A stretch of DNA of 64,000 nt from Setoptus koraiensis (lineage: Eukaryota; Animalia; Arthropoda), in assembly GCA_048013815.1 (NCBI GenBank), contig CM106585.1, forward strand, positions 558,001-622,000. The letters run 5' to 3'. Positions 14,241 through 62,573 of the stretch are shown in pieces (the first letter of the stretch is position 1; each line of letters starts with the position of its first letter). Position numbers and translations under genes: made by a program. The notes beneath the pieces were generated by a model. The model did no database searches. It saw only the letters and a list, made by a program, of their open reading frames with translations, and was not told the origin of the DNA.

Positions 14241-17200
14241 ATGCCACTGAAAAGACAGCGATTAACTTTTATAGAGCCAGCATCTATGATCGGGTTACTA
14301 CTAGAAATATTTATAAAATTGAAACAGAAATTCCTTATTATTTCCATAGTATGTGCATTGATTTTAATGGCAACATTAACCAATGGCAACGGACAGCAAA
14401 TTACTAACGACGATTATAGTAATAAACTCCGGTATAGTAGCAATAGTAACAACAGTAGTGCCAATAGGAAAATATTTTACACCAACGATTATCCACACAT
14501 AAATAATCAAGATACATTACGACAATCTGATAACAGCAACAACAATAATGTATCACCGTTAGAGCAGCGCCATTATTATCGTTCTCACTCGTTACATAAT
14601 CACCATAACAATCACCGTAGAAGCCACAATGATAATGCCCGGTTGGTGCGGCGACCACAACAAGAGAAACACCAAAAGCAATATGATCGCTATGGAACTG
14701 ATAAAGTATTTTCAACTTCTACCAAACAACTAATCAACATGATTGATATTTCAGATAGGCCATTAAAAAAGCCATTCGCAGCAAACGATTCTCCCTTATA
14801 TCACTTAACATCAACATTATCGTCATTAGATTACAGTAGCCTCAATATAAGTGATCAACCTATGTTTAGAGAGAATATCAGCAGAGTACAACAGAATCAG
14901 CTGGTAATGAGTAGAGCGGATCCAAATAAATCGCAACGCAATCTCAATGAAAACAGAGCCTCACCATCACAAGCACTTGCTTCGTTTCCCTCCTATTTGA
15001 ATAAGTTTTTGACCATGTCAAACTCAAGCTCAGATCTACTTCATCATCACCGGCATCACCGTCACCAAATAGACAGGTTGTTTCATTTAGATGACGACAA
15101 CGATGACCACTTTACAATACTGAACGACCTGAACGACGTCAAGCAATACAACACAATTCCATTGATTGACACAAACAATCAACACCAAACACAGTCTGAT
15201 CGTGCAAGTGACGATGATGTTACCTATGAAGCCAGAGATATTCCACAACAGATTGACACAACAGACAAACAATTGTCAATTAGCAATAATGAGCCTCTAG
15301 CTATGCGAACAAACGAAAACGATGGTGACTTATTGTGGCGAACAGCATCGGCAATTAGACACAGACGAAGCAAACATAGGCATTGGTTTCCATTAAATGA
15401 CCACGAGCAACAACATTCAGACAATGACAATTTAGACAATTTAGATTTGGAGCGCCGGAAGGCTCTTTACAGTGAAGATAGCGATGAATTATATAGGACA
15501 ACAAAAAGTGATAACGGCGGTCATCGTCAATCGTCTAGAATAAATGATCCAGATTATGTTCTTTACAGGAAAGAAATGATGAAAGCAGACAAGGGTCTCA
15601 GCCAATTAAATCTAGACAATGGCAATAGGCAATTGATGGCAACAAGCAAGTCTTTTGTTGGCGTGAAAAATGATGAAAATTTCATGGGCAATTCAATGAC
15701 AGCAAACAACAACCGTGATAATGACAAACAATTGACAGACGATGATTTTCCCATTGTATGGATCCTCGACCAAAATGGTGCTACTAGAACAGTGCTGAAA
15801 AGCGATCAACGTTGGATTAATATTTTCAACAATAACAATTTAATTGAAGAATCACCTTTTGCTGTGACGGTCGGTCAATCAATTTGTTTTCATTTGAAAG
15901 ATACAAAATCATTGCGCGAATATCTAATTAGATTCCTTGGTCCAACAGCAAATGCAACAAATATGATGCCACAAGATGTGCCTGATATTTTGTCCTATAA
16001 TCAGTTTCTCAGTGAACACAATCTACAAATAACTGAAAAAACAATCACTAGTAATGATACCACCATTGGTCAGTCACAATTGTGCGTCAACCAACCCGAT
16101 GATTCCCAGATAAATGGGCCTTTGATAGCGGCTGTTGTATCAATTGTAGTACCAATTGTGTTTACATTTATATTTGTAACTGGATTATTAGGTAATATTA
16201 TAGTGGCTTGGGTAATAATTGGCGAACGCCAAAGGGGCAGCCTAAGCACAACTAATATACTTGTCTTAGACCTATGCGCCGCCAATATATTATTCATTAT
16301 AACCTGCATACCATTCACTGCTTGGGACTATTGCGTCCATCACTGGATCTTTGGCCAGGTGAGTAGTGATTTAAATCACAAAACAAATTGACTAATTTAT
16401 CAATCAACTATTTTTTTTTATGATAAAACGCTTATCATTTATTTATAAAAACTGATCAATCAATGAATCTTGTCGATTTGTATAAATCTCTTTGTATCAT
16501 CTCATCATAATGCTGACAATCTCTAGGTTTGGTGCCAGATTAATCAGTACCTCATTGTGGTGTGTGCCCTTAGCTCAATTTATACCCTGGTGCTCATGTC
16601 GATAGACAGATTCATGGCAGCCGTCATACCATTTGGCAGTATGCTATACAGAACCGCCTGTAATACAACTATAGCCATATTCCTAAAATGGTTTCTCATA
16701 TTGTTCTTTTCCTATCCTGTTATAGAGAGACACGAAGTAAATGTTAATCCATTAGATAATACATTGGGTTGTCGATTCAATACAGACCGATACGATTCTA
16801 TTACTTATCAATGGATATTCTTCACAACATCATATAGTATACCACTAATAATTATTGTAATATTATATTGTAAGATATTGCTTAAGATTTGGTGCGGCAC
16901 AAAACCACAAGGTCACACATCGTCATCAAAACAATTAGAGTCTAGAAAGAAGGCAACATTGTTGGTGGCTAGCATTATTGGTGTGTTTGCGATCTGTTGG
17001 GGTCCCATACAAGTGATGTTAATTCTAATGAGATACAACATCGGCTATCAGACAACCATTGCCATTATTTCTCAAGTATTTTCGCACACATTAGGTTATT
17101 CAAACTCTTGTATTAATCCCATTGTTTATGCTTTAGCATCGGACAAATTCATTAGTGACTTTCGGCGCTCATTTTGGGGTCAATTAATTGGCTGTATGAG

Positions 17201-17801
17201 CCAAGATGTAAGTCAACAATCGCATGAAACGCAGCAAACCTCAATAGTTCCTAATAATCACGGTAACCTACATACTCACAACAATCACATAGTCGGGCAT
17301 CATTTAGGCAAGACTAAAGCTCATAATAACAACAATAGTAATAATAATAATAATGTTGAAACCAGTCGGCGCAACAGTAGTAACATAAATATTATCAACA
17401 AAACCAACAACAGTAATAGTACAAGTAATAGTAATAAAAATAATACAAATACCAATACAAATAATCGCAAAAGTAAAATTATTGCCAATGATTGTTATGT
17501 TATAGCAAATACAGATGCAACAACAACCACCACAAGTAACAAAAGAAACAACAGTAATATCGACAATCAAAATTATGTTTCCGTTGGTGATATCAAAGCT
17601 AGTAGTGATCTTGACATTAATAACTCAATTAAATCAACGGTCAACAATCAACAAACAGCGGATGGTCCAAGATTGGCAATAAATGCCCACATTGTTGTCA
17701 ATCTTAGCGAAAAAGTTGAGGAAAACAATTTTGAGACGAAGCACATTAGGAATCACGACCAAGGTGATACGACATCATCTGTAGAAAACGAGAGTAGCTA
17801 A
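14241..17801 (+). CDS. AstA-R: Allatostatin-A/galanin-type rhodopsin-family GPCR, ~1130 aa, with a very long N-terminus and N-rich C-tail
   Basis: Exons 14241-16358 and 16527-17801. The phase-0 GT-AG intron 16359-16526 joins WIFGQ|VWCQINQYLIVVCALSSIYTLVLMSIDRF. Motifs seen: GLLGN (TM1), L(C)AAN (TM2), DRF, FAICWGP (TM6), NSCINPIVY (TM7), matching the arthropod AstA receptor pattern. Confidence 0.88.
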
Positions 17802-18149
17802 TTTGAGTACAATTAATTTTAACTATCAGTTATTGTGAACGAAATTGTAATAAAATATCTATACTTCTATGCTACCTCACCACTTAGTTTCGTGTCATCC
17901 AGCATTTATTCGATCTTTCCTTTTGAGGCTCCATTATTTACATCGGTCCGTCATGAGAATGGTATTTTAGATAGATAAAAGAGAAAACCGTACGCAAACG
18001 TAAATTGTAAAGTCTGGCATGGATTAAACATGATTTTTATTCAGTCAATAGGTATTGGATACAGGGTGCTTTAGAGAAGGCTGTCGGTGTCGATATTGAA
18101 ATATTGATGAACTGTGTTAGAGTCACAGATGCCGTTGAGAGAAAAAACT

Positions 18150-18476
18150 TCAAGCCCAACCAGCCGGTCCACAGGCCCATCGATTATCATCAATGAACGG
18201 ACAATTACGTTTCTTTCTGAGGTTCTTGCCATTTATGTTGCTTGCTACACTTTGTAATAGTCTACCCCCAAGTAACTCGACAGCTTGAAATGGCGTCTTG
18301 GTAGATCCAGGTTGAGAGGCTGATAGATCCGTGTTTGAGGCCTCCAGTGGACGGAAACGTCTCGATACTTGCCTAAGCCAAGGTTCGCCGAATTGAGCAT
18401 ATTGTTGGCATGACACTAGTTGAATCAGCATGATAACAACAGCAAATGATGTAATAAGTTTTAGTTTAGAGGACAT
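18150..18476 (-). CDS. Small secreted peptide precursor, 108 aa; predicted mature peptide NCPFIDDNRWACGPAGWA
   Basis: ATG at 18476 (track start is TTG). Signal peptide MSSKLKLITSFAVVIMLIQLVSC, internal RR, furin site RKKR, then an 18-aa C-terminal peptide with two Cys. Confidence 0.75.
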   Translation of the reverse strand: MSSKLKLITSFAVVIMLIQLVSCQQYAQFGEPWLRQVSRRFRPLEASNTDLSASQPGSTKTPFQAVELLGGRLLQSVASNINGKNLRKKRNCPFIDDNRWACGPAGWA

Positions 18477-19264
18477 CGCTAAAATTGATGAGAAGAACAA
18501 GAGCTCGCCGGAAATAAATTCTCAATAGCCTATTGATTTGTGTTGCGTCGATGATAATATTAATAAACAGGTGATCATCGGGGAGATGTGGCCTGAGAAA
18601 TGATAAATGTGCTTTAGTTAGCGCTGACCTTAAATAGTATTCGATCAATTAATTGAATAGCCATACAATTAAAGAGCTATCAAACATGCAACAATAATTG
18701 CCAGCCAACTGTTTGTTTGGCGACAAGACTAGCAATTCTTGTGACCATGGAACCGCGTTCTATTGTCTTGGTGCAATGTGTTATTGATATTTCGATTGTG
18801 ATGCAAACTGACTTGTCAGACAAGTTAATCATACCAGAAATCACGTGATTATCCCAAGTTGCATGCAATCAAGCATCAATACTGATTGTTATCACACTAT
18901 CGATTGTTTTCAACGAGTGCATGTAAATCTCATGCCTTCTGTTTTGTCTCACTATTATGTAGCTCACAATTGTTTGTCAAAATAACAATTTTCACTCTTT
19001 TTGGTAAACAAGTGACGCAAATCTGTAAATTAACAAGACAACCAACAAGCCCGAGTCAGCATTGTGTGGTAGAAATTAGATGCTATACGAATCAACTTTC
19101 GGCAACTATTGCACAATCTATTCCAATTCTACATATCACCCTGACCGCCAATACTACAGAGACATGTGTTGATAGTTCGTCTGATAAGTTGTTGATTACT
19201 ATTGTGGTCTCATGCTAGAATCAAATCATCACTGAAGCCTAAGGACCCTTGCCACCTTGCCTTC

Positions 19265-19390
19265 TTACCTTGTAACGCGTCCCTTTTTTGCTGTGATCCA
19301 ATATAGTGTTGGAATGGCTTCGCTGTTGGAAAAGAAGCCACCAAGACAAGCCACAACCGTTATTATGCTCGTTAGCCAAAGTATAAACAT
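19265..19390 (-). CDS. Possible 41-aa secreted peptide or first exon (MFILWLTSIITVVACLGGFFSNSEAIPTLYWITAKKGRVTR)
   Basis: Below the ORF-track threshold. ATG in gccaacATG context with an in-frame upstream stop, a signal-like hydrophobic stretch ending SEA, a KKGR basic site, and an AG|GTAAGA donor overlapping the stop. Confidence 0.35.
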   Translation of the reverse strand: MFILWLTSIITVVACLGGFFSNSEAIPTLYWITAKKGRVTR

Positions 19391-21023
19391 GTTGGCGGAA
19401 ATACATTTTTACGTCTTCCGCTCAAACAAATGCTCAAATCGTTTCGTTAATGTGTATGCTCAGAGTACTCTGCTCAGAGTTGATCGATCCTTTTCAAGCT
19501 ACGAAAGGCAATTTGAGACAGAATATAAATTTTTATTAGGTCTTACTATTCAATTGGTTGCAATAAGAATTGTCATTCGGACTGCATCGAACATCATTGA
19601 AAGCAATCCCCGAGAATGTTCGGAATATTTAAAAAAAAATGTTTTTGTTTGAAAAATTTCAATTTTTTAAAGTTCTACAGCTTTTGAAATACACATTCTA
19701 TGCATAAAAGTCGGGTGAGCTTGCACGAGCCTCCGAATCAACATGAGTCTATCGAGTTGTCATAGCTAGCTTGAAACTCTTTTCAGACAAACCTCAACGC
19801 TGCAGATTTCGGTCACTGTTTTCGGCCACTATTTTTTGTATTAGGATCGATCTATTTTTCACATTTTTTCAGCTTTTCGATCCGTGACGAACATTTTTCG
19901 TTTTCAAATGCCTATCTTTAGAGAGAGCGTTTTAGTTCTTGCAAGCGAATGCTATACCATCATCATTTGGAGGCTACAGTTTTATCAAACGGCTTACACG
20001 ATTGGATTTTAGTTATTATGATTATTACTATTTATATACCAATTTTGTACTTATCATATTCACAAAGTATTTTGATAGTATTTATACACCATGCTTGATA
20101 CTTCTCCATATCGTAACAGAAAATGACGGTAGGAACAACATTTCTTCAACTATTTTTGTCGTTCCACAATTCCGTTTTCTAGCGATTCTCAATTTGGTGA
20201 GAACTTCTTTGTGATTCGTTCTAAGCAGACGGCGATAAATAACAGATAAGACCAACTCTTGTATTGACTCGTAGAATACTTTCGGTAGTTCCATTATCGC
20301 TTCGCTAGGACGTTTGATCTCTCATTCAGTCATTCCGTGAGCATACGGAGCCAAAGCGAAATGTAATTAGTTTGCATTCCCGGTTTCAATCTTGTCAACT
20401 TAGAGTCTACAATTGACGTCATCATAGATTGGCAAGATCGTATAGTACATTTGTGTCATGCTCGAGTATAAATTAACCTAGTTATCCTGGCCAAGTTGTT
20501 GTTGCTGCTAATGATTTCCACACTTGATGATGCTGCTGCGACCGCATTAAACATCCTGTTTGTATTACAAAACAGATTATACGATTGGAAACTTGTGAGC
20601 ATCGTCTGTGGCAACTGAGTAGCACATATTGATTATTAACATTTTCACGTTTTACCCTCACACCTCTAGAGTCCAGAAAGTATCGAAAACTCGAAACGCT
20701 TGTCTTTTCACTCACGAAATGCGAAGAGTTCGCAGATATTCAAAAGAGGCCCCAATCTCAATCGTTCTAATCGATAGGATCTAATGTGATGCGTATGGCT
20801 ATGAATTTTGCGCATACATTGTATCATCCGATCTAGATTTCGCTCACAATTCAGTTGTCAGTTATCAATATCCGCCTGGCGGTGAGGTCCTAAACTATGA
20901 ACCAATCATATGGCTAGCGAGCTCTTTCATAAACGGCCTCATCTTCGCAAAAATCCTTTTTATCATCGTGGCCATTTTAAGTTAATTAATTGAAAAACTT
21001 TGCAAGTCACTCAAGTCTTTATC

Positions 21024-62297: not shown

Positions 62298-62573
62298 CTA
62301 CCAACTGGTTACTGGCCTGCCATAGTCTTGAAATTCTTCTCTGGCATGCCAGCCGACATAAGTGCCCTGATCTACTCCAGGAACCACTTCCTCTTCCCAT
62401 TCCTTTGCGTAATTCTTTCCGTCTTTTCCTGTTGTGTAATCGTCATCATCATCATTTGCATCTCTCCATTTTGTTTTAGTGAATGCGTGATTTTTGTAAG
62501 AACCTGCAGAAACTGCGGTGGCGACCATGAGGACCACGAATACAAGAGCTAGAGTAATCTGACTGAAATTCAT
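62298..62573 (-). CDS. Secreted peptide family copy 2, 91 aa
   Basis: Signal peptide MNFSQITLALVFVVLMVATAVSA, then an acidic mature region KTKWRDANDDDDDYTTG..EEFQDYGRPVTSW. Confidence 0.85.
   Translation of the reverse strand: MNFSQITLALVFVVLMVATAVSAGSYKNHAFTKTKWRDANDDDDDYTTGKDGKNYAKEWEEEVVPGVDQGTYVGWHAREEFQDYGRPVTSW

Follow-up and report, generated by a model that had tools for sequence, protein, structure and literature searches.

A candidate intronless gene for a secreted prepropeptide with a putative C-terminal signaling 18-mer in the mite Setoptus koraiensis

We analyzed a 64,000-nucleotide stretch of the Setoptus koraiensis genome (contig CM106585.1, positions 558,001 to 622,000; hereafter the window) and found that the minus-strand frame at 18153-18476 is very probably a real, single-exon protein-coding gene. 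We propose, with moderate confidence, that this gene is intronless and lineage-restricted and that it encodes a secreted prepropeptide of prohormone-like build carrying a putative signaling peptide of 18 residues. By sequence the precursor is an orphan, and it likely represents a processed secreted peptide precursor, a kind of product that is already known. We infer its secretion, its cleavage, the disulfide bond, and the signaling role of its product from the features described below.

The frame runs from a Met codon at 18476 to a stop codon at 18150-18152 and comprises 108 codons in one exon, as read from the sequence; we annotate it as a complete coding sequence on this reading and on dicodon scoring. 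Its first 23 residues (18408-18476, minus strand) form a predicted signal peptide, with a basic n-region containing two Lys in residues 4-6, an uncharged and mostly hydrophobic core of 15 residues, and V-S-C before Q-Q. A crude rule-based test for a signal peptide was positive, and the AF2 model places a helix at the N terminus. Signal cleavage could occur after S22 or after C23; both predicted sites are allowed by the -3/-1 rule.

Between the predicted signal cleavage site and a dibasic site at R39-R40 (18357-18362, minus strand) lies a first propeptide of 15 residues, Q24-S38 (18363-18407, minus strand), which may begin with pyroglutamate and has no amidation Gly. It is followed by a spacer propeptide, F41-L86 (18219-18356, minus strand), in which a helix is predicted over approximately residues 62-84. 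The spacer ends at the tetrabasic sequence R87-K-K-R90 (18207-18218, minus strand), a putative cleavage site of the furin/prohormone convertase type. Cleavage there would leave a predicted C-terminal peptide of 18 residues, N91-A108 (18153-18206, minus strand), non-amidated and with a presumptive disulfide bond.

The two Cys of the 18-mer, Cys92 and Cys102, are the only ones past the signal region of the precursor; they are spaced as C-x9-C, with one residue before the first. Trp100 and Trp107 are spaced as W-x6-W, the former within the Cys loop and the latter outside it in the penultimate position, and the pair straddles the second Cys. The second Cys is followed by G-P-A-G-W-A and then directly by the stop codon. 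Because no Gly precedes the stop, the C terminus is taken as not amidated. A sequence-only reading of this region had listed a signal-like start, the QQ, RR, and RKKR sequences, the C-x9-C and W-x6-W spacings, and the lack of an amidation Gly, and all of these are present. Past the stop codon, an AATAAA polyadenylation-type hexamer was read from the sequence at a distance of 109 nt (18036-18041, minus strand). A TATA-like heptamer, TATTTAA, is located ~155 nt 5' of the ATG (18630-18636, minus strand), which is weak evidence in an AT-rich genome.

In the pathway that we propose, an intronless, lineage-restricted gene would give rise to a secreted prepropeptide of 108 residues. Once the signal peptide is removed, an enzyme of the furin or prohormone convertase type would cut at RKKR (residues 87-90) and perhaps also at RR (residues 39-40). 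The cut at RKKR would free the non-amidated 18-mer from the C terminus, and its two Cys would close a loop of nine residues, leaving over a tail of six. The most likely role for such a peptide would be that of an extracellular signal, a neuropeptide or hormone acting on some receptor.

The predicted protein has the generic build of a prohormone. It combines a signal-like start with basic sites and lacks a globular domain, and secretion and cleavage are both predicted. The genome contains five P_proprotein (PF01483) loci and therefore encodes convertases. AF2 modeling from the single sequence returned a confident N-terminal helix and a helix at residues 62-84, with low confidence elsewhere (<50 over the 18-residue C-terminal peptide) and no globular fold. 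The post-signal protein contains 14% basic residues, a composition at which a run of four would be expected in ~3% of such sequences. By simple arithmetic, the chance that both post-signal Cys fall within the last 18 of 86 residues is ~4%. The look-alikes of the precursor in a protein language model are mostly small hormone precursors (DH31, PDH, urotensin-2B, NPS, NPF, and gastrin); they are a lead only, because all score below 0.9. The recognition value of the precursor in the language-model atlas is low (1899).

Processing alone does not imply a neuroendocrine product, because RKKR is also a furin site of the constitutive pathway; R-x-K-R is the textbook furin consensus. The gene could instead encode a small lineage-specific secreted protein or peptide that is cut constitutively by furin at RKKR and serves a non-neuroendocrine function, whether salivary and directed at the host plant, antimicrobial or toxin-like, or in the reproductive tract. 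In the eriophyoid mite Aculops lycopersici, 83.7% of the genes lack introns, and 351 short secreted proteins restricted to the lineage have been predicted (PMC7738191). An intronless gene for an orphan secreted product would therefore not be unusual among eriophyoids, and this makes a non-neuroendocrine secreted peptide, for example a salivary one, the main rival. The means by which eriophyoid mites manipulate plant tissue are not known (PMC7738191).

The arguments that the gene is real and that its product is secreted apply to this alternative as much as to the prepropeptide reading. A total lack of relatives is unusual for an arthropod neuropeptide, and this genome keeps recognizable genes for myoinhibitory peptide (MIP) and for allatostatins A and C (AstA and AstC), which also speaks for a product of another kind. 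Set against this, both Cys are located behind a tetrabasic site at the very C terminus, after a non-globular spacer, an arrangement typical of prohormones, and we recognized no resemblance to a plant peptide hormone. We consider a non-neuroendocrine product unlikely, although it deserves serious attention, and favor the signaling 18-mer. A bolder version, which we regard as doubtful, holds that the 18-mer belongs to a new family of cyclic signaling peptides restricted to eriophyoid-type mites, either hormones with their own receptor or peptides delivered with the saliva to the host plant.

Our searches for relatives of the precursor came back empty. The protein has no Pfam match, and neither the whole precursor nor its last 50 residues found a match when 5.8 billion proteins were searched by word index. 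An exact look-up in the 5.8-billion collection found neither the precursor ORF nor either of two neighboring ORFs, so the proteins of this genome are not represented there. A phmmer search against 1.84 billion representatives gave two matches (P0001 and P0002), which we rejected as repeat-driven artifacts; in each case, a long protein with internal repeats had accumulated its score over 6-10 weak stretches. By this route, long tandem-repeat proteins can reach an E value of 6e-18 against a short unrelated query. A metagenome scan for the precursor was also blank, and no paralogue was detected within its own genome, indicating a single-copy gene. A literature search with six substrings of the 18-mer yielded no biological match, and no paper retrieved pairs "Eriophyoidea" with "neuropeptide." These blanks are weak evidence, given that records of near relatives were possibly excluded from the databases searched. 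Nor do they show that the 18-mer is unconserved, because a relative sharing only an 18-residue core would, by our estimate, not pass the E-value limits that apply in these databases.

The lack of a homologue or paralogue is also what one would see if there were no gene at all and the frame were open by chance in intergenic DNA, its precursor look being a selection effect of genome-wide scanning. The listed precursor features by themselves are no more than the chance expectation. We generated 20 Mb of third-order Markov sequence modeled on the non-coding DNA of the window and counted the ATG frames of 60-200 amino acids that satisfied crude rules for a signal-like start and ended, after a dibasic site, in a tail of 8-30 residues with exactly two Cys. 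Such frames numbered 9 in 20405, which corresponds to ~22 per 48.7-Mb genome. Frames of 100-130 amino acids are common within the AT-rich window. The W-x6-W spacing is likewise weak evidence, since 11 of the 153 position pairs (7%) match once two Trp are given in 18 residues. Because the feature list alone was not above chance, we evaluated the coding potential of the frame.

A dicodon model was trained on 36 long ORFs (21,559 codons) taken from the window and 200 kb of the same genome. In phase, the precursor ORF scored 0.23-0.26 bits per codon, which places it at the 45th percentile among 182 left-out real-gene segments of the same length, 108 codons; its codon-level score reached only the 18th percentile among real-gene pieces. 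The dicodon score was attained by ~4% of 135 small ORFs outside the long ORFs, and of the four small ORFs that rank highest by it in the window, three correspond to true exons, one of Bud13 and two of Ig domains. The score of the precursor was not attained by any of 2398 null ORFs simulated at 95-140 amino acids (null mean, -0.18; S.D., 0.12), and the remaining five reading frames over the precursor ORF scored negative.

Composition accounts for part of this signal. We used a conservative null that keeps the ORF's own sense-strand composition and is conditioned on an open frame; its mean was 0.02-0.03, compared with -0.18 for the generic null. Under this matched null, 1.3-1.5% of the frames reached the score of the precursor (p ~0.013-0.015, z ~2.1). 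The spacer propeptide, F41-L86, has the highest coding score within the precursor (0.54-0.66 bits per codon). In a sliding scan of 17.8-21.2 kb, no coding-like frame other than the precursor ORF appeared in the 3.4-kb gap, the signal was bounded by the ORF, and no upstream exon of the precursor was seen. The GC content peaks over the ORF, and no RNA family was detected by Rfam over 17700-19300.

A coding signal that is specific to one frame and stops at the limits of the ORF speaks against a chance frame, and the AATAAA lies at a typical distance past the stop. If the feature set and the dicodon score are independent, frames that combine them would be expected well below once per genome. These data argue for a real gene, and we judge a chance open frame to be improbable.

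Two other small frames in the window were noted during this scoring. A plus-strand frame of 131 codons at 19257-19652 shares the intergenic gap with the precursor; its coding score is marginal (~0.07-0.11), it has no Pfam match, and it is probably non-coding. A minus-strand ORF of 91 codons at 62298-62573 ranks second by coding score among the small ORFs that were tested, with 0.27 bits per codon at the codon level and 0.38 at the dicodon level; it has no Pfam match and likely represents a genuine exon or a small gene.

If the 18-mer had diverged strongly from a known family of disulfide-loop peptides, elevenin would be the most plausible one. Elevenin normally sits directly after the signal peptide. 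It is a non-amidated peptide of 17-19 residues with one disulfide bond and a C-terminal Ala in 83% of cases (PMC9963005), and it has been found in mites and ticks (PMC9963005, PMC4237046). The 18-mer shares these general traits: its length is within this range, it has a single pair of Cys, it ends in Ala, and it is predicted not to be amidated. The defining positions of elevenin are Cys at positions 5 and 14 (C-x8-C), an invariant Gly16, Arg15 in 93% of cases, and Ala-Pro before the second Cys (PMC9963005). In the 18-mer, the spacing is C-x9-C, the second Cys is followed by G-P and not by Arg-Gly, and it is preceded by W-A and not by Ala-Pro. Furthermore, elevenin has four residues before its first Cys, whereas the 18-mer has one, and elevenin normally lies next to the signal peptide, whereas the 18-mer is at the precursor C terminus.

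The gene structure of elevenin is conserved and includes an intron inside the peptide-coding sequence (PMC4237046). The precursor frame is uninterrupted, which is a weak test because the sequenced eriophyoid lost most of its introns. A noisy search of the genome with the elevenin core pattern gave 38 matches compared with 19 for controls, and translation by eye revealed no convincing canonical copy. We consider descent from elevenin or a similar family very unlikely. The sequence-only reading had held that the peptide matches none of the families it named, and we agree; the precursor fits none of them, and the defining positions of both elevenin and AstC are lacking.

The 18-mer was also compared with other arthropod neuropeptides, and their canonical genes were sought in the assembly (48.7 Mb in two contigs of ~24 Mb each). 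AstC of the PISCF type has a C-x6-C loop with a Y/F-F-N-x-x-S core and ends in C-F. The loop sequence of the 18-mer is unrelated, and an AstC reading was rejected; the genome contains three canonical AstC-type cores elsewhere (L037, L038, and L039, at G000:C1:17594138, C2:10565098, and C2:12810298), two of them C-Y-F-N-P-I-S-C-F and one C-F-F-N-S-I-S-C-F. Three AstC paralogues are the set known from other arthropods. The first propeptide, Q24-S38, has a Gln start, an aromatic residue at position 3, and Trp at position 10. Corazonin, AKH, and ACP start with pyroglutamate right after the signal peptide, have a Trp near position 8-9, and are amidated via G-K-R; no Gly precedes RR in the precursor, and we rejected a corazonin/AKH-like reading of this propeptide. 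A genome-wide search with a degenerate pattern for corazonin, allowing two mismatches at most, gave no match, and corazonin may have been lost, have diverged, or be intron-split in this genome.

The precursor is convergent with a gene for a galanin/AstA-type G protein-coupled receptor, whose last exon (16557-17801, plus strand; TM3 to the C-tail; Pfam 7tm_1, 6e-30) is not part of the precursor gene. The receptor stop codon is at 17799-17801, and the distance of 348 bp between the two stop codons given by the sequence-only reading proved correct. The receptor has its own AATAAA at 17849-17854 (plus strand); because each of the two convergent genes has such a hexamer, their transcripts need not overlap. 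Among solved relatives of the receptor, GALR2 and GALR1 ranked first for both TM1-2 (4e-13) and TM3-7 (5e-24), with a margin of 9-12 bits over the next receptors. This ranking across both halves of the seven-helix domain supports, at the level of sequence, the AstA-type identity suggested earlier. It is the only receptor of the galanin/AstA subtype in the genome, and its next paralogues are 30-32% identical.

Upstream, TM1-2 of the receptor are encoded at the end of a 716-codon open frame (14241-16391, plus strand), separated from TM3 by an intron of ~165-200 nt. Ahead of TM1, this frame holds ~620 mostly low-complexity residues rich in Asn, His, Asp, and Ser, which are putatively coding; the receptor C-tail is also Asn-rich. 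The closest relative of the receptor, 54% identical over TM3-7, is encoded on a Logan contig of 1760 bp; with 180 nt left past the receptor stop, this contig is too short to read from synteny whether the precursor is present beyond it. On the related contig (L003), which carries the orthologous last exon of the receptor, a minus-strand frame at 1692-1760 runs open to the edge and stops 111 nt from the receptor stop, ending in K-R and a Trp-rich tail of 14 residues without Cys. Its tail-to-tail placement is as in the precursor, but it has no significant similarity to the 18-mer and probably arose by chance.

Does the neighboring receptor, or the receptor for MIP and sex peptide, recognize the 18-mer? 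An 18-mer convergent on MIP or sex peptide would share the W-x6-W spacing. A ligand of the adjacent receptor, kept with it as a unit, would account for the tail-to-tail placement, and cyclic peptides such as somatostatin, MCH, and urotensin have receptors in the family to which this receptor belongs. We estimate that ~1% of genes would neighbor such a receptor (~50 receptors and ~10,000 genes). Animal ligand and receptor genes are not generally linked, so this adjacency carries little weight. In addition, a canonical AstA precursor is encoded on contig 2 (L033/L034, G000:C2:4494869-4498032, plus strand) with several Y/F-x-F-G-L-G-K-R units, and the receptor does not lack its expected ligand. 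The tail-to-tail adjacency is therefore best read as a coincidence, and the caution with which the linkage had been put forward stands.

In this AstA precursor, at least two F-G-L-G-K-R units are 147 nt apart, with an A-Y-G-L-G-M-G-K unit upstream. The second unit is past the end of the first open frame, which suggests an intron or a frame change.

MIPs are characterized by W-x6-W with an amidated C-terminal Trp and no Cys, usually in several copies per precursor; a Gly and a basic site follow the second Trp and direct its amidation. The 18-mer is like MIP in having two Trp six residues apart. It differs in that it ends in W-A and a stop without a Gly/basic amidation signal, is present in a single copy, and has a Cys between its two Trp. 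A canonical MIP unit was found on contig 2 (L025, G000:C2:1582419-1585450, minus strand; unit at C2:1583919-1583950), consisting of K-R, a 13-mer ending in W-N-K-L-R-G-M-W, and G-K-R within a 376-codon open frame. Just one unit is visible in this exon. Drosophila sex peptide combines Trp residues with a C-terminal disulfide, as the 18-mer is predicted to do. The sex peptide family is not known outside Drosophila; our sequence searches returned nothing resembling sex peptide or DUP99B, and the topology of the Trp and the loop differs. With no Trp-amide at the C terminus, a Trp pair that straddles a Cys of the loop, a spacing that has a 7% chance, and canonical MIP and multi-copy AstA genes elsewhere in the genome, a ligand of the MIP/sex-peptide receptor or of the adjacent receptor is the least probable of the readings considered here, and the MIP-like or sex-peptide-like identity first proposed for the peptide is not sustained.

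If the precursor is expressed and processed, the peptides encoded by a very reduced mite genome would gain a member that is invisible to homology-based annotation, and the 18-mer would become a candidate for the ligand of an orphan receptor or of a host target. For now, its practical value is that of a well-defined candidate gene. More generally, a signal peptide, a dibasic site, and a Cys pair are expected together by chance about twenty times in a genome of this size, and such calls therefore need a test of coding potential or conservation before they are believed.

Compared with known systems, the precursor resembles the orphan small secreted proteins of eriophyoid mites in being short and intronless, with a signal peptide and no orthologues outside the lineage (PMC7738191). 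Those proteins differ from it in being defined by prediction only, with no shared motif. In its layout, the precursor is like those of somatostatin, urotensin II, MCH, and allatostatin C. It has no sequence similarity to them, and, unlike their peptides, the 18-mer extends six residues past its second Cys. The number of residues between the Cys is 4 in urotensin II, 6 in AstC, 8 in MCH, and 10 in somatostatin, compared with 9 in the 18-mer. A urotensin-2B cluster appears among the language-model look-alikes of the precursor. As in these families, a signal peptide, a long non-conserved spacer, and a basic site within ~100 residues precede one non-amidated, putatively disulfide-looped peptide at the extreme C terminus.
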